Virus record (IMG/VR): IMGVR_UViG_3300033233_000001
Coordinates: 1 to 64,000 of that record
Direction: 5' to 3' (one strand)
Length of the DNA: 64,000 bases
Positions 4,039 to 64,000 of the stretch are shown here, piece after piece (positions within the stretch are counted from its first letter, which is position 1; every line of letters starts with the position of its first letter). Made by a program: the position numbers and the translations under genes. A model generated the notes under the pieces. The model did not search any database, was not told the origin of the DNA, and saw nothing but the letters and a program-made list of their open reading frames with translations.

Positions 4039-4736
4039 AGCCAGTTGTCGCCGCAGAGATGAGTCGGGTTTACCCGCGTATACGGGACAGTCTGATCCGC
4101 GCGTCGCAGGGGACGGCGGGAAACGCGCCGATCGACTTGGGTTCGACTGCGAACACGCTCGAAAACGGGACAATCGTTCGTGTGTCCGACTACGACGCGT
4201 TTCGGCCTGGTCAGCAGATCTACTTCTACTTGACGGTCTACAACGGCGCGACTCCGGTGAACCCGCAAGATCCGTACATCTCGCGCGTACGCCTGAAGCC
4301 GTGGTGGCTCCGCACCAGCGACGACTTCCGGGCTCCCGGTGGTCCGGTTCCGCCGCTCGGGGCTCCGACGTGGACCAGCAACGACCAGCTTCAGTTCGGC
4401 GGCGGTACGGACGTGAACAACCGCGCGTGCTGGTTCCCGCACCCGAAGATGATCGACGTCAGCGAGTGGCAGTCGGTGAACCCGCCGCCGGCCGCGCCGG
4501 CCCGGCATTCGGACTCGATCATCGTCGACGAGGTCTTCGCGCTCGACCTCCAGCCCCCGACCGACGCGGGGTACCAGGCGACCTTGCTTGCCGGACAGAC
4601 CCTTCTCGGCCGCAGCACGGTCTTCCAGCTGCTTTCGCACGGCTGGGCGCTAGGGTTCACGCACCAATTCGACGTGGTCGGGCAGCCGGGGCCGCATCTA
4701 CTGATCGACCTGACCTGGCAGACCGGGACCCTCTAA
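4035..4736 (+). CDS. Putative virion structural protein
   Basis: GTG start overlapping the upstream stop; beta-rich composition; heads the tail gene block. Confidence 0.55.
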   Translation: MKPVVAAEMSRVYPRIRDSLIRASQGTAGNAPIDLGSTANTLENGTIVRVSDYDAFRPGQQIYFYLTVYNGATPVNPQDPYISRVRLKPWWLRTSDDFRAPGGPVPPLGAPTWTSNDQLQFGGGTDVNNRACWFPHPKMIDVSEWQSVNPPPAAPARHSDSIIVDEVFALDLQPPTDAGYQATLLAGQTLLGRSTVFQLLSHGWALGFTHQFDVVGQPGPHLLIDLTWQTGTL

Positions 4737-4889
4737 GGTCGGGCTTGCGTCGAGATCCTCTCGCGTGCGAGACTGCGTCCGGGCGTCTCGGGCGCGGTTG
4801 AATATGCCGATGTCCTGCGCCAGCACTAACCGTGAGCCCGCTCTGCTCGGTCGTCGACCGAAGCGGCTGCGTGCGTCGAGGGCTAGGTA

Positions 4890-6371: not shown

Positions 6372-6374
6372 ATC

Positions 6375-10336: not shown

Positions 10337-11678
10337 TTGAAATCCTCCGCTCCCTAGCCCGGAGGCTGAGGAAGCGGATTCCCAGGCTCACGCCCAAGAT
10401 CTTCCTGCTTCAACCCCGACCGCACCGGATTCCGAAGAACACGATGTCTTACACCAGGTCCACAGGCAGTCACCGCGAGACCCGCGGCCAGTTGTCGCAG
10501 TCCAGCTGCGAGAACGTTACGTGCAGCATTCACGTCGCGGTCGTGCTCAGCGCCACACTCTGGGCACTGCCATTCGCGCACGCTCAGCGGCAGGTCATCG
10601 AGAAGATACCCGCAGCAGCTGCATGTCTTGGAACTCGGAAACCAACGGTCGACCTTGATCAGGGTACGACCGTACCACTCGCACTTGTACTCCAACTGCC
10701 TCACCAACTCGCCCCAGCCGACATCGCTGATGGCCCGTGCCAGGCTCCGGTTCTTGATCATCCCACTGACGTTGAGACCTTCAACCGCGATCACTTGGGT
10801 TTCGCGAACGAGGTTGGTCGTCAACTTGTGGAGATTGTCCAGACGCCGGTCTGCTACGCGAGCGTTCAACTTGCCGAGCTTGATGCGAGCCTTGTCCCGA
10901 TTCTTCGAGCCTTTCTTTTTGCGCGCGAGACTGCGCGACAGGAACCTCTTGCGCCCGAGTTCACGGTCGTCGTGACGCGGGTTCGCGACCTTTTCACCCG
11001 TCGAGAACGTAACCAGCGACGTGATGCCCAGGTCAAGGCCGACGGCGCTCTCGATGGGCAGCGGCTTCAAGCGCTCGACTTTGTCCTCGCAGAGCAGCGA
11101 GACGTGCCAGCGGCCGGCAGCGTCGAGACCGACGGTCACGGTCGAGGGGTCGACGTTCTCCGGAAGCGGACGACTCCAACGGATGCCGAGCGGCGTGTCC
11201 ATCTTCGCGAGGGTCAGCTTGCCGTCGCGCCAGGTGAACGCGCTACGCGTGAACTCTGCGGAGCCACCGTCACCCTTCTTCTTGAACCTCGGGAACCTCG
11301 CTTGTTTCTTGAAGAACCTCTGCCGAGCACCGTGCATGTGCCGCAAGGCCTGTTGGAGCGGGACACACGAAACCGTGTTCAGCCAAGCGAATTCCGGCAG
11401 CTTCTTCCACGCCGTCAGGTGGGCACTCTGCTTGTTGTACGTCGGCGACTTCTTGGTCGCCGCGTACGAATTGTTGCATTCGCCCAGGCTATGGTTGTAG
11501 ACCCAGCGTGCACAGCCGATTGTCCGACGCAGCAGGGGCTCCTGCTCGGGCGTCGGGTAGAACCGGTAGCGGAAGCCGCGGAGGACCACGCGCAGAGCGT
11601 AGGGCACTTCGGCGACGAGATCAAGAACCGTTTCCTCCCCTGCCTGCAAAGCCGAGGCAGGGGTTTCCACGGAGGATC
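10337..11678 (-). mobile_element. IS200/IS605-family tnpB-only element 1 (IS1341-like)
   Basis: Right end GAAT + CCGCTTCC/GGGAGCGG hairpin ending TCAA; left-end hairpin CCCCTGCC/GGCAGGGG; inferred target TCAG (11679-11682); in-frame empty-site reconstruction. Confidence 0.85.
10354..11670 (-). CDS. tnpB: TnpB RNA-guided nuclease (true start possibly GTG 11589)
   Basis: FRYRFYPTPEQ HTH, RuvC VGLDLG / IAVEGL / DRDVNAA, Zn finger CSCCG...CPECG. Confidence 0.95.
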   Translation of the reverse strand: METPASALQAGEETVLDLVAEVPYALRVVLRGFRYRFYPTPEQEPLLRRTIGCARWVYNHSLGECNNSYAATKKSPTYNKQSAHLTAWKKLPEFAWLNTVSCVPLQQALRHMHGARQRFFKKQARFPRFKKKGDGGSAEFTRSAFTWRDGKLTLAKMDTPLGIRWSRPLPENVDPSTVTVGLDAAGRWHVSLLCEDKVERLKPLPIESAVGLDLGITSLVTFSTGEKVANPRHDDRELGRKRFLSRSLARKKKGSKNRDKARIKLGKLNARVADRRLDNLHKLTTNLVRETQVIAVEGLNVSGMIKNRSLARAISDVGWGELVRQLEYKCEWYGRTLIKVDRWFPSSKTCSCCGYLLDDLPLSVREWQCPECGAEHDRDVNAARNVLAAGLRQLAAGLAVTACGPGVRHRVLRNPVRSGLKQEDLGREPGNPLPQPPG

Positions 11679-32783: not shown

Positions 32784-33176
32784 ATGAAGAAGTTTCTCGT
32801 CGTCGAGCGGCAGGTTGGCGGCTGCGACTACACGATCGGCTGTGGCGTCCGCGTCTACACCGAAGAAGCCGAGTCGATGGCCGCGCTCGTCGCCAAGTTC
32901 AAGCGCGGCTGCGTGCTCACGGAGGACGAGTGCTACGGCACGGACGCGCCGCATCCTGATGAGTCCGACCTGTGGGACCGGTGCAGCGGCTGGCTCGAAG
33001 GGGAACAGGCGCGCGAGTCGGTCGCGGTCTACGAGATCGGCGAGAGCGTCGCGCTGTCGCTGGTTGTGTGGCGGAAGGAAGCTCGCGTGACCGAAGCCGC
33101 TCGGGCAGCGGCGGACGCCGAGAAGAACGAGCGCGACACGCTGAAGAAGCTCCAGCAGAAGTACGGTGCGCCGTAA
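32784..33176 (+). CDS. Hypothetical protein; stop codon supplied by the IS right end
   Basis: TAA at 33174-33176 lies inside the element terminus GTAA. Confidence 0.7.
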   Translation: MKKFLVVERQVGGCDYTIGCGVRVYTEEAESMAALVAKFKRGCVLTEDECYGTDAPHPDESDLWDRCSGWLEGEQARESVAVYEIGESVALSLVVWRKEARVTEAARAAADAEKNERDTLKKLQQKYGAP

Positions 33177-34475
33177 ACCTAACCCCGGCCTAAAGGCCGA
33201 GGCTTTGCACCTGAGTGACAACATGGAGATGCCCGTAGGTACCCCCAACACTCGACGCGTCCGGCCGGGTTACAGCGGCCAGGCTCATGGCACTGTACGT
33301 CGCGAGACCGCGACGGCTGATGTTCTGAGCCGCGATGGTATCGGCATGACCAGCGTGGCCACACCATACGCATTCAAAGACTGCCTGGCTCTTCCGGTTC
33401 GCCTTGCTGACGAAGCCGCACGCCGGACACGTCCTCGACGTGTTCCGGGGGTCGACCACCATCAGCGCGACGCCCGCCAAGCACGCCTTGTAGGTCACGA
33501 AGCCACGCAGCTGAGCAAAAGACCACGAGGAGCGCACCCGACGCTGTGCCTTCCGAACCGTTGTCCGCTCGCGGATGCCCGTCAGGTCTTCCAGGGCAAT
33601 CCCACGTCCGGTGTCTTTGGCACGGGTGACGATCTTCTTGCTCACGCGATGGTTCGTGTCTCTAGCGAATCTCATCTCCTTCCTGCGACGCTTCTTCAGA
33701 AGCCGCTTCGCACTCTTGGTACCAACAGACTGGAGCTTCGAGCGGGTGTTAGCGTACCGCTCGCGGACGACATTCAGGTGGTCTCCCGCGAAGACCGTAC
33801 CGTCCGAGTCGGTCGTGATGTTCACGACGCCGAGGTCTACGCCGAGAAAGTCGACGGGCTCTGCGGGCTTCTCGTACGGGATGCTGACGCTGACGAGCAG
33901 GTAGAACTCGTTGTCGCGGAAGACCAAGTCGGCCTCGCCGTACTTCGAGGAGAGCAGGCGTTCTCGGTCAGCGTCGCGGAAGAGGATGGGACAGCGGATG
34001 CGACCGTCGAGTGTCGTGAGCGTGATTTCCGTCGACTCCTTCTTGAACGAGTACAGTCTCGTGTCGTAGGCGACGCTGCCGCGCGGGCGGAAGGTCGGGC
34101 AGATACTGCGGTCGCGGACGTAGGCGTCGCAGACCTTTGCAATCGTCCGAATGGCCATCTGCGACGGGAGGCCGAAATCGGCTCGCATGTCGTAGTAGAA
34201 CAGCCGCTGGAGCCGGCGCTTGTCGGCGAGCTTGTGCTCGAAGGCTCGGGGCGCGAGCCAGTTGGCCGCAGCGTTCATGCGCTCCATGGTCGAGAGCAGC
34301 GAGTCGCGCGGCGCCTCGTCGAGCACGAGCTTGCCCTGGACAACCAGAACGGTCGGCGCGTCGGGCTTCTTCGGCTTGCACTTGCGAACCACGGGCGGAT
34401 GGTACCACAGATCTGGAGCACGGAGCAGCGCTTCCTCCCCGCCCTGAAGGACGGGGCTTCCGCGCTGGAGATGTG
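33173..34475 (-). mobile_element. IS200/IS605-family tnpB-only element 2
   Basis: Right end AAAG-CCTCGGCC/GGCCGGGG...GGTTTAC; left-end hairpin CCCCGTCC..GGGCGGGG; target TCAC (34476-34479); TnpA-tail remnant RFLPALKDGASA on + strand. Confidence 0.9.
33190..34392 (-). CDS. tnpB: TnpB RNA-guided nuclease, different clade from elements 1 and 3
   Basis: RuvC FLGVDLG / IALEDL / HADTIAA; CPACG...CVWCG. Confidence 0.95.
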   Translation of the reverse strand: MVRKCKPKKPDAPTVLVVQGKLVLDEAPRDSLLSTMERMNAAANWLAPRAFEHKLADKRRLQRLFYYDMRADFGLPSQMAIRTIAKVCDAYVRDRSICPTFRPRGSVAYDTRLYSFKKESTEITLTTLDGRIRCPILFRDADRERLLSSKYGEADLVFRDNEFYLLVSVSIPYEKPAEPVDFLGVDLGVVNITTDSDGTVFAGDHLNVVRERYANTRSKLQSVGTKSAKRLLKKRRRKEMRFARDTNHRVSKKIVTRAKDTGRGIALEDLTGIRERTTVRKAQRRVRSSWSFAQLRGFVTYKACLAGVALMVVDPRNTSRTCPACGFVSKANRKSQAVFECVWCGHAGHADTIAAQNISRRGLATYSAMSLAAVTRPDASSVGGTYGHLHVVTQVQSLGL

Positions 34476-46585: not shown

Positions 46586-46830
46586 GTGAGCACGAGTTCG
46601 ATCCGAAGTGTCCGGACTGTCGACCGGTACTGCTGGACCCGACGACCGGTCGCATGCTGGGGCCGAAAGACCCGGCGATGGTTGCAGCCAGCAAGGCCTG
46701 GGACGAGCAGCTGACGCGCGAACAGCAGGAGGCGTGTCATCGGGTCTGGGTGAAGAACAGCCGAGATCCCGCCGACCTGGAAGCGCTGGAGTGCTTCGCG
46801 GCCATGATGCAGAAGATGGCTGGGAACTGA
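46582..46830 (+). CDS. Hypothetical protein
   Basis: CPDC; GTGA overlap. Confidence 0.6.
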   Translation: MSEHEFDPKCPDCRPVLLDPTTGRMLGPKDPAMVAASKAWDEQLTREQQEACHRVWVKNSRDPADLEALECFAAMMQKMAGN

Positions 46831-46844
46831 GAGGAGACACCAAG

Positions 46845-48215
46845 ATGGGTAGCGGCGAGAACATTTTGCTAGCCAGCGACAGTTACAAGATTTCTCACTG
46901 GCGGCAATATCCGAAGGGCACGCAGCGCGTGTATTCCTTCATGGAGTCTCGCGGTGGCGTCCACGCCGACGTGACCTTCTTCGGCCTCCAGTACCTGCTG
47001 ACGCGGTACCTCGAAGGGCCGGTGGTTACGGCCGAAGATCTGGCCGAAGCCACTGACTTCTACCGCGCGCACTTCGGCGCAGATCTGCTGAACGTCGACG
47101 GCTGGCAGCACATCATCGACAAGCACGGCGGCCGTCTACCGGTCGAGATCTGCGCCGTTCCGGAGGGCACGGTCGTGCCCGTGCGCAACGTGCTCATGAC
47201 GATCGAGAACACGGACCCGAAGGTCCCGTGGCTGACGAATTTTCTAGAGACGTTGCTGTGCCAGGTGTGGTACCCGGTCACGGTTGCCACGCAATCGCGC
47301 GCGATGCGCAAGCTGATCCTCGACGCGCTGGAGCATACCGGCGACCCGTCTCTCGTGGATTTCAAGCTCCACGACTTCGGCTTCCGCGGCAGCACGTCGG
47401 TCGAGTCCGCTGGCATCGGCGCGGCGGCGCACCTCGTGAACTTCAAGGGCACTGACACCGTCGCTGGCCTCGTGCTCGCGCGCGACTACTACAGCGAGCC
47501 GATGGCCGGTTTTAGCGTGCCTGCCAGCGAACACAGCACCATCACGTCCTGGGGCCGCGAGCACGAGGTCGACGCGTACCGCAACATGCTCGACCAGTTC
47601 CCGACCGGGCTCGTGGCCTGCGTGTCGGACAGCTACGACATCTACGCGGCCTGTCGCGATCTCTGGGGTACCGAGCTTCGAGACCGCGTGCTCTCGCGCG
47701 ACGGCTGTCTCGTCGTGCGGCCGGACAGCGGCGATCCGCCGACCGTCGTCGTCACGGTGCTCGACATCCTCGGCGAGAAGTTCGGGTTCACCATCAACGA
47801 GAAGGGCTACCGCGTGCTCGACCCGCACGTCCGCGTCATCCAGGGAGACGGCATCGACTACGAGATGCTTGGGAAGATCCTCTCTGCGATGGAGCGTGCC
47901 CGCTGGTCGGCCGATAACGTCGCGTTCGGCTCTGGCGGGGGCCTTCTCCAGAAGGTGAACCGCGACACGCAGAAGTTTGCGATCAAGTGCTCGGCCGTGC
48001 AGATCAACGGTGAATGGCGTGACGTGCTCAAGGACCCGGTAACCGACCCTGGGAAGAAGTCGAAAGCCGGGCGCCTGCGTCTCGTCCGCGAGGACGGCGT
48101 GTACAAGACAGTGACCGGCGAGGGCCCGACGCTGCTGGAGCCGGTGTTCCGTGATGGCGTCGTGTTGCGGCGACAGACGTTCGCTGACGTGCGCCGCCGG
48201 GCTGTTGCCACATGA
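46845..48215 (+). CDS. nadV: Nicotinamide phosphoribosyltransferase (NAMPT)
   Basis: SDSYKISH, HDFGFRG, PASEHS, VSDSYD, RPDSGDP, IQGDGI, FGSGGGLLQ, RDTQKFAIKCS. Confidence 0.97.
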   Translation: MGSGENILLASDSYKISHWRQYPKGTQRVYSFMESRGGVHADVTFFGLQYLLTRYLEGPVVTAEDLAEATDFYRAHFGADLLNVDGWQHIIDKHGGRLPVEICAVPEGTVVPVRNVLMTIENTDPKVPWLTNFLETLLCQVWYPVTVATQSRAMRKLILDALEHTGDPSLVDFKLHDFGFRGSTSVESAGIGAAAHLVNFKGTDTVAGLVLARDYYSEPMAGFSVPASEHSTITSWGREHEVDAYRNMLDQFPTGLVACVSDSYDIYAACRDLWGTELRDRVLSRDGCLVVRPDSGDPPTVVVTVLDILGEKFGFTINEKGYRVLDPHVRVIQGDGIDYEMLGKILSAMERARWSADNVAFGSGGGLLQKVNRDTQKFAIKCSAVQINGEWRDVLKDPVTDPGKKSKAGRLRLVREDGVYKTVTGEGPTLLEPVFRDGVVLRRQTFADVRRRAVAT

Positions 48216-48478
48216 AGCCGCTAGAGTTCAAGGAGAAGATGTACGCGCTGCTCATGCGAGCGGCACAGAACGAGCTTGAGCCTAGCGTGGTCCTTTCCGA
48301 GCTTGGTGATGCGTACGCGTGTCTGGCTCACTGCGGGGGCGTATCGAAGGAAGACGCGTTGAAAGAGATAGCCGACCTCTACGACGACAACGTTGTCATT
48401 GGACACGAGATGGAACGTGAACGCGGCGTACACGGTAGAAACGGATGCTCCGATCCATCCCTTCGGAGACGGCGCTGA
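48212..48478 (+). CDS. Hypothetical protein whose 3' end runs into the first CRISPR repeat
   Basis: ATGA overlap with nadV; last codons encoded by repeat 1. Confidence 0.55.
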   Translation: MKPLEFKEKMYALLMRAAQNELEPSVVLSELGDAYACLAHCGGVSKEDALKEIADLYDDNVVIGHEMERERGVHGRNGCSDPSLRRRR

Positions 48479-48532
48479 CGGGGGGAAGACGATGCCGAGC
48501 AAGACGACTGTAGAAACGGATGCTCCGATCCA

Positions 48533-48994
48533 TCACTGTTCCTCGGCGCGGGAACCCCGTCCTTCAGGACGAGGAGGAGCGCCGCTCCGGTTTTGGTTCT
48601 GGACGTAGCGCGCGACGACTTCTAGCGGCGCGCCGCCGCACGACACGGCGCAGTAGCTCGGCGACCAGAAGTGATCTCCCCAGAGCACGTTCGTGACCTC
48701 GCGAAAGTTCTGCGCCCGCAGCCGTCGCGCGGACACACCCTTGAGCGAGTTCACGAGCTTGGCGATCGCGACCTTCGGCGGGTAGTCGATGAGCAGATGC
48801 GCGTGGTCCGGCTCGAAGTTGGCCTCCCGAAGCTCGCTTCCGAAGTCGGCGCAGACCTCAACCCACGACGCTCGCAGAATCTCGAACGCTCGCTCCGAGA
48901 TCGCGCCTCGCCGGTACTTCGGCACGAAGACCAAGTGCACGGACAGCTTGTGCACGACGTGCCGCCCCTTGCGAAAGTTCTCGACCTGTGCCAT
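48533..48994 (-). CDS. tnpA: IS200-type Y1 HUH transposase
   Basis: HLVFVPKYRR, DHAHLLI (HUH), LVNSLKGVSAR, FWSPSY, RYVQNQ. Confidence 0.97.
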   Translation of the reverse strand: MAQVENFRKGRHVVHKLSVHLVFVPKYRRGAISERAFEILRASWVEVCADFGSELREANFEPDHAHLLIDYPPKVAIAKLVNSLKGVSARRLRAQNFREVTNVLWGDHFWSPSYCAVSCGGAPLEVVARYVQNQNRSGAPPRPEGRGSRAEEQ

Positions 48995-50305
48995 CCTGGC
49001 GTTTCTAGCATGTCGGACACCGACGGCAAGACCAAAAAGCTCAGGACGTCTCGGTACCGGGTCTATCCGACCGACGAGCAGGTCGCCCGCATCGAAGCGT
49101 GGCAGGATCCGCTGCGTCTGCTCTGGAATCTCGGCAACCAGCAGTACTTGTTCTCGCAGGAGCGTTGCCGTTACGGTCGGAAGTGGCCGCACCCGTTCGA
49201 GCAGGCGAACCAGTTGACCGAACTTCGCGCTGAACACGAGCGGCTGCGCGACGTCCCGTACGATCTTGCCGCGCGCGTCTTCGTCGAGTTGAACCTGTCC
49301 TGGCAGCGATGCTGGGCTGGGCTCGCCGAGCAGCCGCGGTTCAAGTCGAAGAATCGCGGCGACTGGACGGTCATGTGCGAGCCGAACCCGAAGGTGTTTC
49401 GGGCCGAGGATGATGCGATCGTCTTCCCGAAGCTCGGGCGGATCGAAGCGGTCGTCCACCGTCCTCTGCTCGGCAAGCCGAAGACCTGCACGATTACCCG
49501 TGACATAGATGAGTGGTACGTCTCGATCGCCTGCGAAGTCGTACGCGATCCTGATGCGTTGCCGCCGCCCGTGCCGGTCGGCGCGCCGGTCGGCATCGAC
49601 CGCGGCGTAGTGAACCTGTTGATGGACAGCAACGCGCGGCCGACGGCGAACGCGCGGTACGACGACCAGACACGTGTGCAGGTCGCTCGTGCGCAGCGCT
49701 CTGCGGCCAAGAAGAAAAAGGGAGGAAAGAACAGGAAGAAAGCAAACAAGGTTGTATCCCGTCTGCGAAGGAAGGCGCGCCGGCAGCGCGACGCCGTTCT
49801 GCATCGCGAGAGTCTTCACTACGCCAAAAATCACAGCGTGGTGGTCATCGAGAAGCTGAACCTCCCGAACATGACGAGGAGTGCGAGTGGCACGGTCGAG
49901 GAGCCCGGTACGAACGTCGCGCAGAAGCGCGGGTTGAACCGGAGCATCCTCGGCGCGGGCCTCGGCAAGTTCGGGACGTACTTGAAGTACAAGGCCAAGG
50001 ACCACGGGTCGACGGTTGTCGAGGTACCGGCGGCCTACACGTCTCAGACGTGCTCGTCGTGCGGACACGTCGCGGCCGAGTCCCGGAAGACACAGAGCGA
50101 GTTCGAGTGCGTCGCGTGCGGTTATTGCCTGCATGCTGACGTGAACGCTGCCAAGGTGATACTCAGCCGTGGAACCCACGGCGGTGCAGTCTGCGGAGGA
50201 TCCGGCGCCCTAGGCCGCCCGAAGAAGCAGAAACTCCGCGTCGTGAGGCGCGGATCTCGATCTGTGTCCGGGAAAGCCCCGGACTTCAGGCCGGGGTAGG
50301 TTTAT
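48537..50305 (+). mobile_element. Complete IS605-type element 3 (divergent tnpA and tnpB)
   Basis: Left-end hairpin CCCCGTCC-TTCA-GGACGAGG after TCAC; right end AAAG-CCCCGG/CCGGGG-TAGGTTTAT; both ends align to element 2. Confidence 0.9.
49010..50299 (+). CDS. tnpB: TnpB RNA-guided nuclease, 429 aa
   Basis: RYRVYPTDEQ; RuvC VGIDRG / VVIEKL / HADVNAA; CSSCG...CVACG. Confidence 0.97.
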   Translation: MSDTDGKTKKLRTSRYRVYPTDEQVARIEAWQDPLRLLWNLGNQQYLFSQERCRYGRKWPHPFEQANQLTELRAEHERLRDVPYDLAARVFVELNLSWQRCWAGLAEQPRFKSKNRGDWTVMCEPNPKVFRAEDDAIVFPKLGRIEAVVHRPLLGKPKTCTITRDIDEWYVSIACEVVRDPDALPPPVPVGAPVGIDRGVVNLLMDSNARPTANARYDDQTRVQVARAQRSAAKKKKGGKNRKKANKVVSRLRRKARRQRDAVLHRESLHYAKNHSVVVIEKLNLPNMTRSASGTVEEPGTNVAQKRGLNRSILGAGLGKFGTYLKYKAKDHGSTVVEVPAAYTSQTCSSCGHVAAESRKTQSEFECVACGYCLHADVNAAKVILSRGTHGGAVCGGSGALGRPKKQKLRVVRRGSRSVSGKAPDFRPG

Positions 50306-50576
50306 GAAGGTAACCCTGACCACGGTGGTAGAAACGGATGCTCCGATCCATCCCTTCGGAGACTCGTAGGCCATCTTGCTACGCTCCGTCGGGTCTCGTG
50401 TAGAAACGGATGCTCCGATCCATCCATTCGGAGACGACGCACAAGGCCACCTGCGAGATCTCTGCGGGTTCGCGAGTAGAAACGGATGCTCCGATCCGTC
50501 CCCTCGGAGACCTCACCGGCACGTGCAGCCGGGCGCGATACTCGACGGACGGTAGGGTTCAAGGTATCCTCGCGAG

Positions 50577-54980: not shown

Positions 54981-55244
54981 ATGGCGAACGTGCGTCGAAA
55001 GCGAACGACGGAAGAGCAGGCCCTCTACGACCAGATCCAGAACGCGAAGCGGCTTCGCGTGGAGCAGGCGGCTGAGATCGACCGTGCGGTCGACCTGCTC
55101 TTCGAGGTCCCGGCCGAAGAAGCGACCGACGCGGTGCTTGGCGTGCGCGCGCGCTTTGCGCTCTCGGCGCGTCGTCGGTTCGACGAGACGACGCAGCGGC
55201 TGGCACGGCTCGAAGAGCGCTACGAGGCGCTGCGTCCACTGTGA
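54981..55244 (+). CDS. Coiled-coil hypothetical protein
   Basis: 87 aa. Confidence 0.6.
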   Translation: MANVRRKRTTEEQALYDQIQNAKRLRVEQAAEIDRAVDLLFEVPAEEATDAVLGVRARFALSARRRFDETTQRLARLEERYEALRPL

Positions 55245-55522
55245 CGCGAGCCGAGCGACTCTTCCCGCTTGCCGAGCGGTACATCCAGCTGGTGCTCGAA
55301 CGGCGGCACATGGCGCTGCGGATGAACAAGCGCGATGTCTCGAAGCTCGACATCGACATCGACGAAGCACTGCGCGACTACGAGTCCGCTGAGGCGCGCG
55401 AGACGGTCGCGCAGATGGATTCCGATCTGCCGCCGCGATCTCCGGCACGACCACGACCTGGCGCTCGTCGATACGGACCGAGTCACCCGTGGAACAGTCG
55501 GGCGGTGCCGCCGAAGCGATGA
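55241..55522 (+). CDS. Hypothetical protein
   Basis: GTGA overlap. Confidence 0.5.
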   Translation: MTRAERLFPLAERYIQLVLERRHMALRMNKRDVSKLDIDIDEALRDYESAEARETVAQMDSDLPPRSPARPRPGARRYGPSHPWNSRAVPPKR

Positions 55523-55686
55523 GCTATCCGGGTTCGCCTTGTGCCAGCCAGTTCAGATACTGGTCGACGAGGTAGTCGGGGTCGGCCGTGTTCGCGTCGA
55601 AGAGTTCTGGTCGCAGAGCCGACTGCCGTGCGTAGCGCATGAACTTCATGAAGCGCCGCAGATGCTCTCGCTGTGATCCGGAAAGC

Positions 55687-56052
55687 TCAGCCCGCATCGG
55701 GGCCCCGTGCCACTCGAAGCGCGGCCGTCATGAGTGCGAGGTCGTCCTTGCCGGCCGCGTCCGGCCGGATGGCGTCGACCGCGGCCCTGGCCTCGGCCTT
55801 CTTGAACCCGAGGCTCACGAGCGTCTTCTCTGTGCCGGCGAGCTTCTTCTCGCGGTTCTCGATCTCGCCGCGCGCGACGATGTCGGCGGCGATCCGCGCC
55901 TTCGTGTTGCGATCGCTGGCCGGATGCGCGACGGCCACGAGCGCACGCCGGACGATAGCGCGGGCGCCGTCGAAGATCTCGTCGAGCGGCAGGCTCAGGC
56001 TGATCCAGCGGTTGATGTGCACGTGGGCGCGGCTGCGGAGTTTTCCTGCCAT
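55687..56052 (-). CDS. Protein with RuvA C-terminal-like domain
   Basis: TLVSLGFKKAEARAAVDAI...LMTAALR. Confidence 0.6.
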   Translation of the reverse strand: MAGKLRSRAHVHINRWISLSLPLDEIFDGARAIVRRALVAVAHPASDRNTKARIAADIVARGEIENREKKLAGTEKTLVSLGFKKAEARAAVDAIRPDAAGKDDLALMTAALRVARGPDAG

Positions 56053-56111
56053 GACGTCCTGCTTGTGACACACTCTAGACGATGCGGCGTCGCTTGTCGA
56101 GAGCGCCGCGA

Positions 56112-56599
56112 CTACGTCGTCGGCGGCACGAACGAAGCGCACGGCTTGTCCTCGGCACGCCAGCGCCGCAAGAGGCCCGCGAGCAGCCATCCGCGGTCGG
56201 TGAGCTTGAAGACCGGCATCAGGCCCGTGCCGTTCCACTCCAGCAGCCCCTCGTGCTCCATGTCGGACGCCTGATCCCAGTCGTCGTGTCCGAAGAGATC
56301 GACGTCCTTGAGCCGTGTCGGGTAGCGCTTGACGATCGGATTGTGGCCGAGTGTCTCCTCGCCGTCTGCGCCGCGTCAAAGTGACCACGACGCGGGCGTC
56401 CTGGCTCTGAGCGCATGTTGTCTGCGTTCGGCTTGCCGTCGTAGTCGACGCACCTCGTCTCGATGTATAGCAGTGTCGACCAGTGATCCTTGCTCCAGCG
56501 AGCCATCGCGATGGGCTTGCCATCCCACTCGGCGACGAGGCGTAGGCTGGGCGCTTCCGCCGCGGGTATCGTTTTCGTAGCTGCCGTCTTCGTTGCCAT
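56112..56599 (-). pseudogene. Frameshifted hypothetical gene
   Basis: HWSTLLYIETR..NMR in one frame; KRYPTRLK..HDDWD..FKLTDRGW in the -1 frame; shift near 56366-56375. Confidence 0.65.
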
Positions 56600-57309
56600 C
56601 AGTCCTCCTCGCACCGCAGCTTGAAGCGGCGGTCGACCATCTTCCAGTTGTCTATTGGAATCATCGCGCGACACCCGGCCTTGCAGAGCGCCTCGTAGAC
56701 CTCGGCGACGATGAACCAGCCGATGACGGCGGGGTCGGTGGTCGCGAGCCAGTGGGCGTCGACGCGGCTCAGGTAGGGGTCCTCGGCAGAGTAGTTGGTG
56801 AGCCGCCCCATCTTGCAGATCTGTGCGACGTGCGTGTACGACTCTTCGGACGACTCTTCGGAGAGGAGGTCGACGAGCACGGAGTCATGTTCACCGTCGT
56901 CTTCGGGCGGTTCGTGTCCGCGCGTCGCCATGCGGAACTTGTTGCCGCCTTCGTCGTATGTGCCGTCGTTTTTGCCGCGCCAGATGTACGGCTTCTTGGC
57001 CTCGAAGGACCAGCGCGTCGGGTCGACGATCGTCTCGCAGTTGACGCCGTACTTGCCGCGCTCGTTGGGCAGCACGATCCAGCCGTGGTTACAGAACGCC
57101 TGTCCGGCTCGTCCCTCCCAGTAGCCCTTCGGGCTGATCTCGCCGAGCCAGTGGCCGTAGACTGCGACGCCGCCGAAGTACGACGCGAGCTTACTGGCGA
57201 CCGCGAAGCAGTTGCCTTCCCAGTCCGCGACCGGCAGCCCGACGAGCTTCTCGGCGCCGCGCATCGTGAGCTTGGCCTTGACGGGACCGTCGATGACGTG
57301 GACGGTCAC
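56599..57309 (-). CDS. Hypothetical protein
   Basis: GNCF...HGW..IVDPTRW motifs. Confidence 0.65.
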   Translation of the reverse strand: MTVHVIDGPVKAKLTMRGAEKLVGLPVADWEGNCFAVASKLASYFGGVAVYGHWLGEISPKGYWEGRAGQAFCNHGWIVLPNERGKYGVNCETIVDPTRWSFEAKKPYIWRGKNDGTYDEGGNKFRMATRGHEPPEDDGEHDSVLVDLLSEESSEESYTHVAQICKMGRLTNYSAEDPYLSRVDAHWLATTDPAVIGWFIVAEVYEALCKAGCRAMIPIDNWKMVDRRFKLRCEED

Positions 57310-57310
57310 G

Positions 57311-57820
57311 TCACCACCCGTTGGTGAGGTAAGCCTCGCGCACCGCGTCGTCGTCGCACTCCAGCGCAGCGTCGAAGATCAGCAGAAACTTGTTGTCATC
57401 GGTCTCCGTGTCGTAGCAGACCATGACGTGCGTCTTTGTGCGGTAGACCCACTTCGGCAGGAAGCGCTGTGTGTAGATGGGCCCGCCGAAGAACTCTGGA
57501 TAGTTGGCCTTGGTGTCCTTGCCGGACGCGATGTCGGCTTCCAGGTGGGCGCGGGCGTCCTCGAAGGTGCGCGCTGCGAGCGGCTCGTCCGAGTAGACCA
57601 GCTTGGCGCCGGCCCCTTCTCCGCCCACCAGCATCCAGCGCTGTCCGCGGCAGTCGTCGAGCGGGATCTCAACATAATCTGGCTTGTAGCAGAACGCCTT
57701 GTGGACGGCGGCCTTCGCCGAGAAGTACGCGTCGATCTGCGTGTCCAGTGGTGTGAGCTTCTTCTTCTTCATCGGAGCGAGCTTCTTCTTCTTCATCGGA
57801 GCGAGCTTCTTCTTCTTCAT
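57311..57820 (-). CDS. Hypothetical protein with triplicated N-terminal MKKKKLAP
   Basis: In-frame ATGs at 57820, 57796 and 57772. Confidence 0.7.
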   Translation of the reverse strand: MKKKKLAPMKKKKLAPMKKKKLTPLDTQIDAYFSAKAAVHKAFCYKPDYVEIPLDDCRGQRWMLVGGEGAGAKLVYSDEPLAARTFEDARAHLEADIASGKDTKANYPEFFGGPIYTQRFLPKWVYRTKTHVMVCYDTETDDNKFLLIFDAALECDDDAVREAYLTNGW

Positions 57821-57826
57821 CGGAGC
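57755..57826. repeat. Perfect 3 x 24-bp tandem repeat
   Basis: GAGCTTCTTCTTCTTCATCGGAGC x3. Confidence 0.95.
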
Positions 57827-58089
57827 GACTTTCGCTTGCGCTTCACGCGCCGGCCGCGAGCGAAGAGGCACTTGATCGCCGCCTGCTTCGCGGCGTACAT
57901 GATGTCCTGCATCTCGTCGTTGGTGAAGTCCGGCGGCCTCTCCAGGCCGAGGTCCGCACTCACGCGGCCGATTGGTCGCATGTGCGGGTGTTGGTCGTCC
58001 TTCGTCCACCGCGAATGTTCGGTGGTGAAGACGTGGAGGTGCAGCAGCACCTCTTCCGCGAATGCCGGGCCCTGGTCCTTTGCGCTCAT
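57817..58089 (-). CDS. Hypothetical protein
   Basis: ATGA-coupled. Confidence 0.55.
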   Translation of the reverse strand: MSAKDQGPAFAEEVLLHLHVFTTEHSRWTKDDQHPHMRPIGRVSADLGLERPPDFTNDEMQDIMYAAKQAAIKCLFARGRRVKRKRKSLR

Positions 58090-58406
58090 TGTTCGTAGCC
58101 CTCGGCAAGTGGCAGCGGACACCAATCTGGCGGCGGCCAGTACTCTGGAAACCCGCCCTTGCCCGGCGGTCCCGGCGGCAGCGGACGGAAGCAACGAAAC
58201 GGCTGGCCTGATCCGTCAGTGAACGGAGGACGCCCGTCTTGGTCCAGCCGACCCTCGGTCTTAGGGTGGTAGCAAGCCGAAGATGCTCGGCTGTGCACGC
58301 AGTCGCAGCACGCGCTGATCACCAGCAGCCGCTGGCCCGGCTGCGGCTTCGCTCGCTCGCTCGCTGTGGCCGCTTCGCGAGCAGCGCGCGCTTTCGTCAT
58401 GGTCAT
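58086..58406 (-). CDS. Cys-containing hypothetical protein
   Basis: CCDC..CYHP..WCPL. Confidence 0.55.
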   Translation of the reverse strand: MTMTKARAAREAATASERAKPQPGQRLLVISACCDCVHSRASSACYHPKTEGRLDQDGRPPFTDGSGQPFRCFRPLPPGPPGKGGFPEYWPPPDWCPLPLAEGYEQ

Positions 58407-58810
58407 CGTTTGGCCTTTGCCTCTGCGGCGACGTCCATGGCCTCCATGACAAGCCGGATGGCCACGGTGCGTGCGTCGTACGTTAGCGGACATGGCTCCG
58501 TCTCGTAATCGTAGATGGCAACGCCAAGCGTTTCCACCGCCTCCGTGAGCACGGCGAGCGCGGCCTCTGCGACGCCCCTGGCGCGCATCTCCCTGAAGAG
58601 CGCGCGACCGTCCGCGTCGTGCAGATCGACGCGGCGTGTCAGCGCTGCCTTCGTCTCGTAGAGGACGACGGTCAACCGCTCGACCTCGTGGAGAAGTTCC
58701 CACCGCTCGTCCACGGCGGCGGGCCACGGGCGCTCGAAGCCCTTCGAGCGGATCTCCGCGAGGCGCTCCGGCGTCACGACGACCTCGGAACGCGTTGCGA
58801 GCCGAAGCAT
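58403..58810 (-). CDS. Hypothetical protein
   Basis: ATGA-coupled. Confidence 0.5.
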   Translation of the reverse strand: MLRLATRSEVVVTPERLAEIRSKGFERPWPAAVDERWELLHEVERLTVVLYETKAALTRRVDLHDADGRALFREMRARGVAEAALAVLTEAVETLGVAIYDYETEPCPLTYDARTVAIRLVMEAMDVAAEAKAKR

Positions 58811-59082
58811 GTGTTGCACGTTTGCCACCCGTGCCCCCACCCGACGAACACGCTGCCGGCGACGTGGTTCCTGGCGTCCGGCGGACGCTTGCACTTCTGG
58901 CACTCGTCGTCGTCGGTGCGGAACCACCCGCGCGCGCGCAGCCAGCTTGCAGTCACGTTCGCGTCGGGCTTCATCACGAGGCCGGTCGGGAACGGCCGCC
59001 GGTCGATCACTTCGATCACCTCGAACGCGTCGCCGTGCGGACCCTCCCATACGTCGCCGACCTGATGGCGCTCGTCGCTCAC
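58774..59082 (-). CDS. Zn-finger hypothetical protein
   Basis: CQKC...CNTC; GTGA overlap. Confidence 0.5.
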   Translation of the reverse strand: MSDERHQVGDVWEGPHGDAFEVIEVIDRRPFPTGLVMKPDANVTASWLRARGWFRTDDDECQKCKRPPDARNHVAGSVFVGWGHGWQTCNTCFGSQRVPRSS

Positions 59083-60542
59083 GGCGTCCTCCAGCGGTCG
59101 AAGAACGAGGGCTCGCGGAGTGCGAGGAGGCCGAGGCGCGCGCCGAGCTTGCAGAGCGCCTCGTGGTAGGCCTCGCTCAGATGATCTGACTCGAAGGAAT
59201 GACCGAACTCGTGAACGAGTAGCTGAAGCACGTCCTCGTCGAGCGGGCTCTTGTCGAACCAAGCCTTGCCGAGGCGCGCGACGTTGAAGTGCAGCACGCC
59301 GTCGCCGAAGCACGCGGCGTAGCGGCCCTGGAAGTCGTTGAGGATCGCGACGTAGACGCGACCGCGCAGTAGCCGCTCGCCGAGCGCCTTGCTGAACTCG
59401 ACGATGCGCTCCATGCCGGGCGTCCACTTGTCGCGCGGGTAGTCGCAGTCGCGGCCGCCCGCGGCGAAGATGACCTTGGGGCTCGGCGTGACCTGCCCCG
59501 CCGGGAGCGCCGCGCCCGAGCGTCGGATCGATTCCCAGGCCGAGCCCGAGAAGCTGCCGGCCTCGATGATGCTGTAGCCCTTGCTCATCGCGAGTTTGGT
59601 GCCCTCGGGGTCGCTCGGGTCGCGCACGACGCGCTTCTCGCCGTAGCGCTCGGTGATGACGGCCGTGACCGCCTCGTCGGTGACGAGCTTGCTCTCGATG
59701 GCGTCATCGACCCATGCCTCTCGCGCGTGTGCGCCGAGCCGGTCGTGCATCTCGTTGACCACGAGCGCGCGGAGCTTGCGCGCGTAGGCCGGCGTGACGT
59801 TGTCGCGGTCGCTGTTCAGCGGAGTCTTCTGCGCGACGTCGCAGTGCCACGCTCCGTCGAGCACGACGACGGGGATGCCCATCTCGTAGAGCGTGGGGCT
59901 CTCGCCTTCGCGCACGTCGTAGAGGCAGACCTTCGTGAAGCGCTCGGTCGGGCGCAGGTAGCCCTCGTCGTCTGCGATCTCCGTCGGCAGCTGGGCCTCG
60001 AACTCGCGGACGATCTCGCGCGACGGCAGGCGCACACCGTTGAGCGTGACGATCACGCTGGGCGGCACGAGCACGCTGTGGACGGCCCGCTCGGTGCGTG
60101 CTGCGTCCTCCTTCGTCATCCGCAGGTGCACGGTGACGACGCTGCCGCCGCCGGTGCGAGCCTTGCTGTGGTGCCGGCCGCGCTCGTCGAAGACGACGGT
60201 GCCGGTCGTCGTCGCGATCGAAGCGTACGTGCTCGCGGCGATCACGAGCTTCTCGCCGAGGTTGAAGCGCCCGCGCTGCTCGGGGTTGGCCTTCTTGGCC
60301 GACTCGGCGAAGAGCGTGTACGCGTGCCGCAGGTCGGTGAAACCCTCGGGGTTGTCGTCGGCCACGACGAGGACCCACGTGCCGCGCTTGTTCTCGTCGG
60401 GCGCGAGCGTGACGCCCACACGCATCGACTTCTCGTCGAGGCTGTTCTGGATCAACTCCAGCGCTGCGAACTCGATGCCGCGCCGGGCGAGGAGCTTGCG
60501 GAGGCCGACGCGGTCGACCTCGAAGTGCTGAGCAGTGGTCAC
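59079..60542 (-). CDS. GHKL (HSP90-like) ATPase with C-terminal HExxH motif
   Basis: ELIQNSLDE, VADDNPEGF, GRFNLGEK; LLVHEFGH. Confidence 0.8.
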   Translation of the reverse strand: MTTAQHFEVDRVGLRKLLARRGIEFAALELIQNSLDEKSMRVGVTLAPDENKRGTWVLVVADDNPEGFTDLRHAYTLFAESAKKANPEQRGRFNLGEKLVIAASTYASIATTTGTVVFDERGRHHSKARTGGGSVVTVHLRMTKEDAARTERAVHSVLVPPSVIVTLNGVRLPSREIVREFEAQLPTEIADDEGYLRPTERFTKVCLYDVREGESPTLYEMGIPVVVLDGAWHCDVAQKTPLNSDRDNVTPAYARKLRALVVNEMHDRLGAHAREAWVDDAIESKLVTDEAVTAVITERYGEKRVVRDPSDPEGTKLAMSKGYSIIEAGSFSGSAWESIRRSGAALPAGQVTPSPKVIFAAGGRDCDYPRDKWTPGMERIVEFSKALGERLLRGRVYVAILNDFQGRYAACFGDGVLHFNVARLGKAWFDKSPLDEDVLQLLVHEFGHSFESDHLSEAYHEALCKLGARLGLLALREPSFFDRWRTP

Positions 60543-60829
60543 CAGCCACCGCCTTCCGCGCGGTCTGCGCAGCGGTCGCACTGGTAGCCGCGCGCTACGT
60601 CGGCCGGCGTCAGCACGTTAGGCGCACAGCACGTTGGGCACGAGTGGATGCGTGGGTTCGAGCGCGTCGCGGCGCGCAGCGCCGAGCGGCCGCCCGGATC
60701 GGCGAAGCGCGTGCCGTCTGCCAGTGGCGCGCTCGGATCGTCCGAGTCGTCGTCCCCGCGCTCGACCTCCGAGTCGTCGACCTCCGAGTCGTCGTCCTCG
60801 TACGGATCGATGTAGTTGTCCTCGTCCAT
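60539..60829 (-). CDS. Acidic N-terminus + Zn-finger protein
   Basis: DDSEV x2 (15-bp duplication); CPTC...CDRC. Confidence 0.7.
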   Translation of the reverse strand: MDEDNYIDPYEDDDSEVDDSEVERGDDDSDDPSAPLADGTRFADPGGRSALRAATRSNPRIHSCPTCCAPNVLTPADVARGYQCDRCADRAEGGGW

Positions 60830-60874
60830 CTCGGCTCCTCCTGTCCGCCATGTTCGGCGGCTCACCTGGAAATG

Positions 60875-60902
60875 AATCTAGCACGTCGTTCGCGGTGCGC
60901 AA
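60875..60902 (-). promoter_or_regulatory. sigma70-like promoter with extended -10
   Basis: TTGCGC-N16-TAGATT with TGC directly upstream of -10. Confidence 0.55.
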
Positions 60903-61167
60903 GTGCCTATCGCAACAAAACACAGCGCTGTCGGACCGTCACCAAGCGCCCGGCCCGCGCTTGCCGCGTCGCGCGGTGCCCTCTCCCATGTTCGAGCGCC
61001 CGACGTGCGTGGGTGTGCCCTTCTGCTTCTTCGTCTGCTTGTGCGGGACGATCTGGCTGCGGTCCGGTCCGTGTTCTTTCCGGTAGCCAGTCGCGCCGCA
61101 GTTGCAGGTGAAGCGGCCCATCTCCATGGGCATCGGAGTCCACTCGTGCGTGTGGTCGTCCACCGCC

Positions 61168-61647
61168 TTACGCTGTCCCGAGCTTCTGCTTGAGCGCTTC
61201 GAGTTGACGCAGGTCGCGGGCCCGCTCTTCCGACGCGTCGGCGGCCTTCTTGCGTTCTTCCTCGGCCGTGTCCTTCGCCTTCTTTTCGGCGAGCCGCTTG
61301 TCGGCCACCTCGTGCGCCTCGGCGGCGATGGACCGGGCTTCGGCGGACAGCGCGCGAAGCTCCGCGTACTCCTCTTGCAGATCGTCCGTACCGGCGTCGG
61401 AGTCGATGCCAGCGCTGTTGACGAAGACGTGGCTCTGTCGATCGCCGTAGGGCGTCCGATACGTGCGTACCTCGGTGCCCCCCAGGAAGTACGCGTGTGC
61501 AAGCGCGGCGACCGCGTGCTCGCGCGTCTCTTCTAGGGAGATCTCGAAGGCGCTGTGCGTGCGATAGTCGAGATGTGACCCGCTGTGGGAAGCCCCGTCT
61601 GCGCGGTAGGTCACCACGGTGTACAGTCTCAGCGCGTTGTTGCTCAC
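61168..61647 (-). CDS. Hypothetical protein
   Basis: GGAGG RBS; coiled-coil tail. Confidence 0.65.
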   Translation of the reverse strand: MSNNALRLYTVVTYRADGASHSGSHLDYRTHSAFEISLEETREHAVAALAHAYFLGGTEVRTYRTPYGDRQSHVFVNSAGIDSDAGTDDLQEEYAELRALSAEARSIAAEAHEVADKRLAEKKAKDTAEEERKKAADASEERARDLRQLEALKQKLGTA

Positions 61648-61949
61648 GTTTCCTCCTTGCCCGTGTCCACGGGCAGTGTGATCTGCACGTCGGCCTGTAG
61701 GCCCAGGTCGCGCATCGCGCGATAGACTTGGTGCTCCAACTCGTTCAGCGTCGAGTTGATGGGCCCCCAGGCGAGTTCCGCGTCGCGGCCGGCCACCGTC
61801 ACCTCGATCGTGTACTTGTGCTTCTTCACGTCGGTGGGCTCCGGCGCGTGATGGCTACCACGCGCGTGCGCGCCCAGCGCACGGCGAGGCCGATCCACGG
61901 CAGTGCGGCGAGGATCGCAAACAACTCGTCTTGGCAAAAATGCACCGGC

Positions 61950-62333
61950 TCAGCCCTTCGCACGCTTCGCGGCGGGCGTGGTCGATGAGGATCGTCGGTC
62001 GCGAAGGCGAAGTTGCCGCCACGTGCGTCTTGAGGTACCGTCTGCGCTGGATGCTCCGATCCATCCACTCGGAGACGCCAGACGCGCGAGCCGCGCCCAC
62101 GCTTGCTGCGCCGCGGCCCCGAAGACGGGGCGCGCCGCGCCGGGGAGCATGACGCCGACGTCCGCCGGCAGCAGGCCAGTGGCGATCCAGTACTCGCCGG
62201 TCGGCGTGCCGTAGACCGGCTCCGCCTCGTCGATCTCGCGCTCCTGGGCTTCGACGAGCACTTCCGAGCGGCCGTCGAAGATCCACAGGCCGCTGTCGCC
62301 GCCCTGGTCCCAGGTGAGGTCGAAGATGCGCAT
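61950..62333 (-). CDS. Hypothetical protein whose 3' part reads through the solitary repeat
   Basis: TGATG coupling to the upstream gene. Confidence 0.5.
   Translation of the reverse strand: MRIFDLTWDQGGDSGLWIFDGRSEVLVEAQEREIDEAEPVYGTPTGEYWIATGLLPADVGVMLPGAARPVFGAAAQQAWARLARLASPSGWIGASSADGTSRRTWRQLRLRDRRSSSTTPAAKRAKG
62049..62076. repeat. Solitary 28-nt CRISPR repeat unit
   Basis: GGATGCTCCGATCCATCCACTCGGAGAC = repeat positions 9-36 with 2 mismatches. Confidence 0.85.
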
Positions 62334-62671
62334 CAGAGGCACCAGAGCCCTTCGCCGCCGAAGTCGCCGTGGGTCTCGCCGTTCGGGAAGCGGACCTTGA
62401 CGGCGCAGCCGCGCGGGTCGCCGTTGAAGTCGATCTGCGTCACGCCGTACTCCTTGAGCGCGGCCGACACGCGCGCTTCGAGACGCGAGTCGCGCTTCTC
62501 TTCGCGCTCGGTGAGGCTGCGGTTGCAACCGGTCTCTGCCAGCGTGTGCAGGCTGTGCGCGTCGCGCAAGATCGCGATCGCTTCGCGCGCGATGATGTGC
62601 GCGGGCTTGGTCTTCGGCGCGTACCGCGCGAGGACCGCAACGAAACAGGCCGTGTCTTCGAGGTTGCTCAT
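62333..62671 (-). CDS. Hypothetical early protein
   Basis: FNGDPRGCAVKV motif. Confidence 0.7.
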   Translation of the reverse strand: MSNLEDTACFVAVLARYAPKTKPAHIIAREAIAILRDAHSLHTLAETGCNRSLTEREEKRDSRLEARVSAALKEYGVTQIDFNGDPRGCAVKVRFPNGETHGDFGGEGLWCL

Positions 62672-62719
62672 GATCTTCTTCTTCCTCTCGTCCGGCGTGT
62701 CTGCCGGCTCACGTCCATC

Positions 62720-62748
62720 TATCTAGCAATCGCCCCGTGCGCTGTCAA
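62720..62748 (-). promoter_or_regulatory. sigma70-like promoter
   Basis: TTGACA-N17-TAGATA with TGC extended -10. Confidence 0.7.
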
Positions 62749-62978
62749 GCGTCTGTCGCAACGTTTCGCAGCAGGGTCAGACCCGGCGAGTGAGCGCTTC
62801 TTGTCGGTCATCGTCTCCTCCTTCTCGTGCGTCGCGCGCTGCTCTCGGTACCGGCTTCTCCCCCGGCCTAGAATGGGGGCGTCTTTGACCGGTCGGTTGG
62901 CTTCTGGCCGTCGCCTCTGCCGCTTGGCCCTTTGCATGACCGAGCCCGCTCCGAGAGCAGCGCGCGACGCGCGCGCGT

Positions 62979-63398
62979 TCAGCCGTAAACGAGTTCTCCC
63001 AGAAGCGAAAGCTGCACCAGCACATCTCCAGTGATCGCGTCGTACTGGTCGGCGACGAAAGCCGCGAAGTGCTTCGGGTGCTTCGCGGCCATCAGGTCGA
63101 GACCGCGCTGGATGACCTTGCCGTTGAGCACGAGCGGCTCGTAGTCCTTGTCGCCCTCGTCCGTGCCCGTGTCGTCGTCGTCGACGCGGCAGACGACCGC
63201 GCCGCCCTGTACCGGGTAGTCGCAGTACTCGTGGATCATGCCGTCGCCGAGCAGCGGCTTCACCGCGCCGCGCGGCTTGCGGTACGTCATGATCCGGCAC
63301 CAGCTGCCGCAGCCGTAGCTGCCGCCCTCGAATGCCGAGCAGAGCAGGCCGGCGACCTTCTCCGCTGTGATCTCCGTCGTGACCGTGAACGCGCGCAT
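62979..63398 (-). CDS. Phage hypothetical protein
   Basis: SAFEGGSYG..W; DAITGDVLVQLSLLGELVYG. Confidence 0.7.
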   Translation of the reverse strand: MRAFTVTTEITAEKVAGLLCSAFEGGSYGCGSWCRIMTYRKPRGAVKPLLGDGMIHEYCDYPVQGGAVVCRVDDDDTGTDEGDKDYEPLVLNGKVIQRGLDLMAAKHPKHFAAFVADQYDAITGDVLVQLSLLGELVYG

Positions 63399-63445
63399 GG
63401 GTCTGTCTCTCTTTCAGGTCGCCGTGTTGGGCGACTCACAAGCGT

Positions 63446-63473
63446 ACTCCAGCAATGCTCGCAGCGGTGTCAA
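63446..63473 (-). promoter_or_regulatory. sigma70-like promoter
   Basis: TTGACA-N16-TGGAGT with the same ATTGC upstream as the 62720 promoter. Confidence 0.55.
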
Positions 63474-63477
63474 GCGC

Positions 63478-63723
63478 CTACAAGCCGATTGCCGCGATTG
63501 CGGTCGCGAGGTCCGCCCCGCGCCCGATGTACGTGAGCGGTGTCGGCGTGTAGCCGTGGTCGCAGCGCGATGCGTGTTCTGGCAGGAAGACGCCGGGGTA
63601 CAGCGTCGCGTCGGTGACGGCCACCGTGAAGCGCCCGCCGCGAGCGTAGGCTCGCACCTGACCGCCGCGAGCGCGGACGTCGCGCAGAAGCTCTAGGCCG
63701 TTCTCGACGGCGTGACGGCTCAT
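63478..63723 (-). CDS. Hypothetical protein
   Basis: 81 aa. Confidence 0.5.
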   Translation of the reverse strand: MSRHAVENGLELLRDVRARGGQVRAYARGGRFTVAVTDATLYPGVFLPEHASRCDHGYTPTPLTYIGRGADLATAIAAIGL

Positions 63724-63725
63724 GG

Positions 63726-64000
63726 TCAGACGCATCGATCCTCCATCGTGGGCGGCAGCGCGCGGTGGCACGCGCGGTACGTAGCCTCGAACGCCTCAAG
63801 CTCCGACCAGTCCTTGCGCCGGAGGTTGAGCACGGCCTTGACGTGGACGTGTGCCGCGTCGCGCGTTCGGAATGACGCTTCGTTGTAGAGGTACGCGGTC
63901 CCGCCGACGCCGATGAAGAGGTCGCACGGGTTGTACGAAGCTCCGTCCAACGGCAACCACAGCCAGACGGTCGTGCCCTGCGGGTTCGAGATCTTGTAGC
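63726..64000 (-). CDS. Hypothetical protein, 5' end outside the window
   Basis: Frame open to the window edge. Confidence 0.55.
   Translation of the reverse strand, partial: YKISNPQGTTVWLWLPLDGASYNPCDLFIGVGGTAYLYNEASFRTRDAAHVHVKAVLNLRRKDWSELEAFEATYRACHRALPPTMEDRCV

Follow-up and report, generated by a model that had tools for sequence, protein, structure and literature searches.

A solitary CRISPR repeat fragment at a gene breakpoint in a phage genome, possibly a recombination relic rather than a Cas6 decoy

What is a single piece of a CRISPR repeat doing inside a phage gene, away from the array that it matches? The piece in question occupies positions 62049-62076 of the window, the whole stretch of DNA analysed here, which covers the first 64 kb of an IMG/VR virus record of 297,749 bp (GC content about 65%, completeness rated at about 90%). 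The source sample is a sediment metagenome, and the genome shows the hallmarks of a giant phage together with many mobile elements. The region is present in one source DNA run only, and in the reads that were checked the contig was identical and no variant form was seen. An original prediction took the piece for a solitary repeat ending exactly at the Cas6 cut site, and thus for a Cas6 decoy or processing site in an early transcript, or else for the relic of an integrated processed crRNA.

The match itself, described as 28 nt of the array repeat with two mismatches, was confirmed. A search of the window with 62049-62076 returned five matches as against 0.00 expected from 100 shuffles, and an nhmmer profile built from all copies scored the 28-mer at E 4e-9, with 26-27 of 28 bases matching, which together rule out a chance match; nothing else in the 297,749-bp genome scored better than E 0.5 with this profile. 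Two mismatches separate the unit from the consensus copies at 48443-48470 and 50336-50363 and one from the copy at 50408-50435, and both mismatches fall in the hairpin loop. On the + strand the unit corresponds to positions 9-36 of a 36-nt repeat, which we call family 1, and lacks the first 8 nt. The similarity does stop as sharply as had been noticed at this 8-nt segment: when the complete 36-nt frame (62041-62076) is compared, seven of the eight upstream bases differ and only two of the nine substitutions lie within the 28-nt part. A profile scan of both flanks gave no degenerate second repeat, and the unit is therefore truly solitary; a loose BLAST match about 110 nt upstream (61930-61965), considered as a second degenerate repeat, was unsupported by the profile scan. 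The solitary status claimed earlier thus holds near 62 kb, where nothing else was found, but a full solitary copy at 204952-204987 of the genome and a partial copy at 48510-48534 had been missed.

Seven family-1 copies were found in all, every one on the + strand. Full 36-nt repeats start at 48435, 50328, 50400 and 50476, and the array that they form spans 48.4-50.5 kb with unique spacers of 36-40 nt. The first repeat (48435-48470, +) is preceded by an ORF (48212-48478) that runs into it, and a partial repeat consisting of the 5′ 25 nt (48510-48534, +) is cut at the left end of an IS200/IS605 element, while the last three repeats (50328-50511, +) are separated by two unique spacers of 36 and 40 nt. 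The IS200/IS605 element inside the array (48537-50304, +), whose ends were set by homology to a second element at 33174-34465, carries tnpA for a Y1 transposase (about 48533-48994, −; E 8e-36) and tnpB (49010-50299, +; guided_TnpB, E 7e-66). Since the ends of the element are 87-88% identical to those of the second copy, the TnpB between the array halves is an insertion and was excluded as the array effector. The insertion and a second truncated repeat make family 1 appear to be a decaying CRISPR family, and variant repeats are found within it; repeats of a second family in the same genome, family 2, are identical except for one base in one terminal copy. Resemblance of the array spacers to each other, or to the sequences behind the solitary units, was considered and is not significant.

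Family 2 also has 36-nt repeats and forms two arrays, one of five repeats at genome 87309-87643 (−) and one of three repeats at 131193-131376 (+), both with the same leader of about 230 nt. This common leader and a variant last repeat fix the direction of family 2, which bears on the direction of family 1. The original prediction had read the family-1 array on the − strand; from four independent, indirect lines we infer that it lies on the + strand, the orientation that the prediction itself had named among those results that would refute it. First, it sits within a block of + strand genes (36.5-55.3 kb). Second, mismatches to the consensus rise from left to right (0, 1 and 2 in the repeats at 50328, 50400 and 50476), which is the usual decay towards the trailer end. 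Third, the + strand reading of family 1 agrees with family 2, taken in its fixed direction, at 20 of 36 positions, as against 7 of 36 for the flipped reading (P about 2e-4 by shuffling). Fourth, the family-1 stem (repeat positions 14-19/29-34) is invariant and ends 2 nt before the spacer, with changes confined to the loop, and families 1 and 2 share a predicted structure, a 5-6-bp G+C-rich hairpin in the 3′ half of the repeat, 2-4 nt from the spacer. Judged by comparison with known repeats, this conserved hairpin would suggest a type V-like layout with no Cas6-type 8-nt handle. In self-processing type V effectors such as Cas12a, the hairpin stays on the crRNA as its 5′ handle. This handle measures 19 nt in type V-A (bioRxiv 10.1101/2024.10.29.618823).

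How does a Cas6 decoy fare against this orientation? The model supposes an array of − sense and a repeat that has lost its 8-nt 3′ handle, by which an early transcript would decoy Cas6 or be processed by it. An alternative − strand stem of 5 bp (GGAUG/CAUCC) would end right at the fragment edge, and the statement that the surrounding genes lie on the − strand proved correct, which gives the local transcript the − sense that the model needs. However, besides the evidence that places the array on the + strand, this 5-bp stem is not the predicted fold and is not conserved: it is disrupted in the 204952 copy, has a mismatch (in − sense) in the repeat at 50476 and is lacking in family 2. On the − strand, the conserved stem would leave 13 nt where the model needs 8. 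A scan of about 175 phage ORFs (at least 160 aa each) gave no Cas6, and 185,579 species genomes gave no host array with this repeat, only 31 single matches to the repeat pattern, a number consistent with chance. The strong promoters said to drive the − transcript were not recovered either, no sigma-70-like site being present in 61500-62800 or near the unit in 55000-64000, as judged by a consensus that may not be the host's. We thus regard the Cas6 model as highly improbable.

The other side of the unit is a broken gene. The 62-kb unit lies inside a called 127-aa ORF and is antisense to its local gene block. This ORF, here gene X, starts at 62333 (−), where it overlaps the stop codon of the preceding gene, and continues with no stop codon to 61950. 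An exhaustive profile-free search yielded ten remote homologues of 92-202 aa, nine of which were used to build a family profile of 121 nodes; nodes 5-89 align with gene X (E 8e-31) as far as its codon 84, and the third base of this codon and the first of the repeat fragment are one and the same. Coding signal stops at the unit as well: third-position GC content (GC3) is 0.93-0.95 in the conserved part, codons 1-84 (62077-62333, −), and about 0.64 in the tail beyond the repeat (61950-62048, −), where the coding signal is gone. None of the three frames below 62048 resembles the C-terminal tails of the gene X family, hence the fragment marks a breakpoint rather than a clean insertion. A clean 28-nt insertion that merely shifted the frame of gene X was also considered and rejected, as taking out the 28 nt would join the frame starting at 62047, in which no coding signal and no significant resemblance to the family tails were seen. 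The extent of the loss can be given only loosely, since these C-terminal tails vary and one homologue stops only a few residues past the junction. Word searches with gene X and with the gene beside the other solitary copy (gene Y, see below) returned self matches only. Between the repeat region and the next gene lies a likely 39-codon hydrophobic ORF (61827-61946, −), whose stop overlaps the GTG start of that gene at 61829.

Because the unit points opposite to what the original prediction assumed and sits at a broken gene end, we read it as a recombination relic and not as a Cas6 decoy, a reading to which we give a probability of roughly 0.45. The 28 bases would then be a leftover piece of a family-1 repeat, in the + orientation of the array, joined to the broken 3′ end of gene X. 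A repeat-spacer unit, or the processed transcript of one, would have recombined with phage DNA, leaving a piece of the repeat where the two were joined, and gene X would thereby have lost its stop codon together with C-terminal residues, from a few to about 30. The unit would presumably have no dedicated function of its own, but a side effect is to be expected should both RNAs be made, since the gene X mRNA would then contain a 28-nt antisense match to every family-1 repeat transcript. What leads us to this reading is that breakpoints occur at two gene edges, that the unit is antisense, that neither a promoter nor a terminator was found and that family 1 appears to be decaying. The relic of an integrated processed crRNA suggested earlier comes close to it, except that the orientation is now the opposite one and Cas6 has no part. 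If the unit is indeed such a relic, it would be a marker that the CRISPR repeats in a giant phage can spread to the edges of genes and disrupt them, and one repeat family of this phage would be decaying while two others stay intact.

The second gene edge is provided by the full-length solitary family-1 repeat at genome 204952-204987 (+), which has four mismatches and the same loop variant as the 62-kb copy. It supplies, in frame, codons 5-16 of gene Y, an ORF of 76 aa which extends over 4941-5171 in the numbering where the repeat (204952-204987) is 4953-4988. Gene Y is a Q-like zinc-finger ORF with homology to PHROG 6060 (E 6e-6) that starts at its residue 19, equivalent to profile position 2; the repeat ends 2-3 codons earlier, GC3 rises to about 0.94 immediately past it, and gene Y lacks a start codon of its own. 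Both solitary units therefore abut genes exactly at the repeat/spacer border, antisense at 62 kb and sense at 204952, and an overlap with the end of an ORF (48212-48478) is seen at the first repeat of the array too. A more specific form of recombination, in which the solitary units are footprints of events between the array (or a processed crRNA) and matching protospacers in phage genes, seems rather unlikely to us. In that case the repeat would have been planted exactly where a type V PAM would lie, which could represent escape by PAM overwriting or gene capture by an array-bearing phage, and the 5′ processing site of the crRNA would be preserved in the 28-nt copy. In 2019 Varble and colleagues reportedly observed, in staphylococci, spacer-mediated recombination of phages with CRISPR loci and transduction of these loci, and that work is said not to describe stable solitary repeats inside a phage genome. 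Such recombination would yield a repeat abutting phage sequence at the repeat/spacer border, as seen here, but an illegitimate event would have to be invoked for the second junction at 62 kb, which falls at repeat position 8/9.

Several features count against a mere relic. The stem and both its flanks are intact in both solitary copies, with all changes of the hairpin region in the loop; on the + strand the 62-kb unit consists of 5 nt, a 6-bp stem with a 9-nt loop and a spacer-proximal AC. The break lies 5 nt upstream of the stem, like the 5′ handle of self-processing type V effectors. A weak TTGCCG-17-TACCGT element, seen by eye, would start + strand transcription at about 62049, and single pseudo-repeats are known to serve phages as decoys or guides. 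These features would suit a functional, crRNA-like unit on the + strand, antisense to gene X, that acts as a decoy (like Racr) or as a single guide (like CreR/Cracr) for a Cas12-type effector; the effector, of the host or of the phage, would bind the hairpin of a minimal pseudo-repeat. We consider such a unit possible, if on balance doubtful. The same scans that bear on the Cas6 model bear on it too, as no promoter-like site was found within 250 bp upstream in the + sense, no U-tract terminator was found after a spacer-length stretch behind the unit, and these promoter and terminator scans gave no defined small-RNA ends around it. What would serve as the spacer is coding sequence of the phage itself, read in antisense, and the rest of the genome offers it no target beyond 9-nt seeds; the scanned ORFs gave no effector for the family-1 repeat. 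The position of the unit inside a called ORF also speaks against this reading.

RNA anti-CRISPRs (Racr) derive from solitary repeat units, including some against type V-A (Camara-Wilpert et al. 2023, PMC10651486); candidates sit between genes, with a promoter at most 250 bp away, and imitate the repeats of the host (PMC10651486). The 62-kb unit resembles them in being a single repeat-like unit in a phage genome, away from cas genes and with its hairpin intact. It differs from them in that no promoter was detected and in that the repeat it mimics is the one in the phage's own array; it also lies in a called ORF at a gene breakpoint, although coding signal and family homology of this ORF end at the unit. 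CreR/Cracr RNAs, described for type V-A, consist of a pseudo-repeat, truncated but keeping the hairpin, followed by a guide (bioRxiv 10.1101/2024.10.29.618823); they carry a terminator, and the PAM-proximal part of the guide matches a cas or toxin promoter over at least 9 nt (bioRxiv 10.1101/2024.10.29.618823). Here too we see a partly degenerate pseudo-repeat with hairpin and a guide-like stretch directly behind it, but the unit has no terminator, coding sequence of the phage itself takes the place of the guide and no target was found in the phage. That said, the phage does hold a solitary repeat followed by a guide elsewhere, at about 172.6 kb behind one of its own tracr-like RNAs, which speaks for the functional unit.

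This second example belongs to the surroundings of the one core Cas protein found among the scanned ORFs, a Cas12f-like protein of 552 aa (genome 170288-171946, −), whose best PDB matches are Cas12f chains (E 5e-15) and which PADLOC assigns to Cas12u3 (E 2e-26). Alignment with four TnpB paralogues shows that its first RuvC aspartate is replaced by histidine, and from this sequence the protein may be a nuclease-dead, phage-encoded, RNA-guided DNA binder. The locus (genome 169725-171946, −) comprises the gene, then a tracr-like RNA, then the repeats of a third family, four plus one degenerate, with spacers of about 24-39 nt. One paralogue of the tracr-like RNA (genome about 172520-172830, −) is followed by the single family-3-like repeat and guide-like stretch mentioned above, and a second lies at 71568-71742 (−); the first 11 nt of the guide-like stretch recur at genome 71068, about 500 nt from this second paralogue. 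The leader of family 2 has a 43-nt block in common with the tracr-like RNA of the Cas12f-like locus.

The tracr-like RNA downstream of the Cas12f-like gene pairs with its repeat over a long anti-repeat (28 of 36 positions complementary, duplex −50.5 kcal/mol), and this raises a further possibility for 62 kb, namely that the unit works from the − strand. The tail of the gene X mRNA, with its 28 nt complementary to family-1 repeats, would then pair with the + strand pre-crRNA and either block the hairpin or create a substrate for RNase III, as a tracr-like or antisense regulator. Besides the precedent of the Cas12f-like locus, the − strand direction of the local genes is in favour of such pairing, as is a predicted duplex with the repeat of −54.9 kcal/mol, compared with −21 to −33 for unrelated stretches. 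Yet a tracrRNA would combine its anti-repeat with a conserved scaffold, and the region at 62 kb shows no similarity to any of the three tracr-like RNAs, which are paralogues of one another; relative to the genes around it, the sister copy at 204952 is oriented the other way; and defined ends of a small RNA were not found, as stated above. An anti-repeat function of the gene X mRNA is therefore quite improbable in our view. Whatever probability these four readings leave (relic, + strand unit, − strand anti-repeat and Cas6 decoy) belongs to something we have not considered. Activity on either strand would make the unit an RNA regulator or decoy derived from a repeat, in a type V-like setting and within a phage that has a Cas12f-like protein of its own.

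Among the same set of about 175 phage ORFs of at least 160 aa, Cas7, Cas10, Cas13 and a large Cas12 were not found, and no effector adjoins either family-2 array. A 1122-aa gene beside a family-2 array was examined as a candidate effector and turned out to be a UvrD helicase with an intein; this UvrD/PcrA-like gene extends over 3843-7211 (−) in the numbering where the family-2 array 87309-87643 is 3310-3644. Beyond the phage itself, no syntenic relatives were found in IMG/VR, and the family-1 repeat pattern was not found in other IMG/VR contigs. In JGI metagenomes the pattern matched only this contig and one bacterial-looking ORF, where 25 of 28 bases agree in frame (positions 977-1004 of a 2-kb metagenome contig); this is probably a chance match, about 0.1-0.2 such matches being expected by our own estimate. 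No Rfam family matched.

Virus-borne mini-arrays and solitary repeat units were reportedly described by Faure and colleagues in 2019. The present phage is similar in having short arrays with no adjacent adaptation genes, plus stray single repeats, but it differs in holding three repeat families, one of them with a Cas12f-like gene and tracr-like RNAs, and in that both stray units lie exactly on gene edges. We find the wider locus more interesting than the 28-nt unit alone, as three repeat families and solitary repeat-guide units occur there together with three tracr-like RNAs and a Cas12f-like protein that appears to be nuclease-dead.

Some further features of the genome were recorded along the way. 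Inteins are present both in the UvrD helicase and in an RtcB RNA ligase, and the phage also encodes a Ro60/TROVE protein. A NAMPT gene (nicotinamide phosphoribosyltransferase; 46608-48215, +) lies just 5′ of the family-1 array, with an 88-aa ORF (48212-48478) in between, and a perfect 24-nt tandem repeat of 3.1 copies occurs at 57755-57828 of the window. TnpB-like frames number six across the phage genome, those outside the array including 33174-34465 (−) and 10354-11670 (−); the element at 33174-34465 shares LE and RE hairpins with the IS element of the array but has no tnpA. Within the array IS, tnpA and tnpB are divergent, and its left junction falls within a repeat, straight after CAC. Each solitary copy has CCAC at the matching repeat position, and the second IS copy is likewise preceded by CCAC, which may be the target motif of the element.
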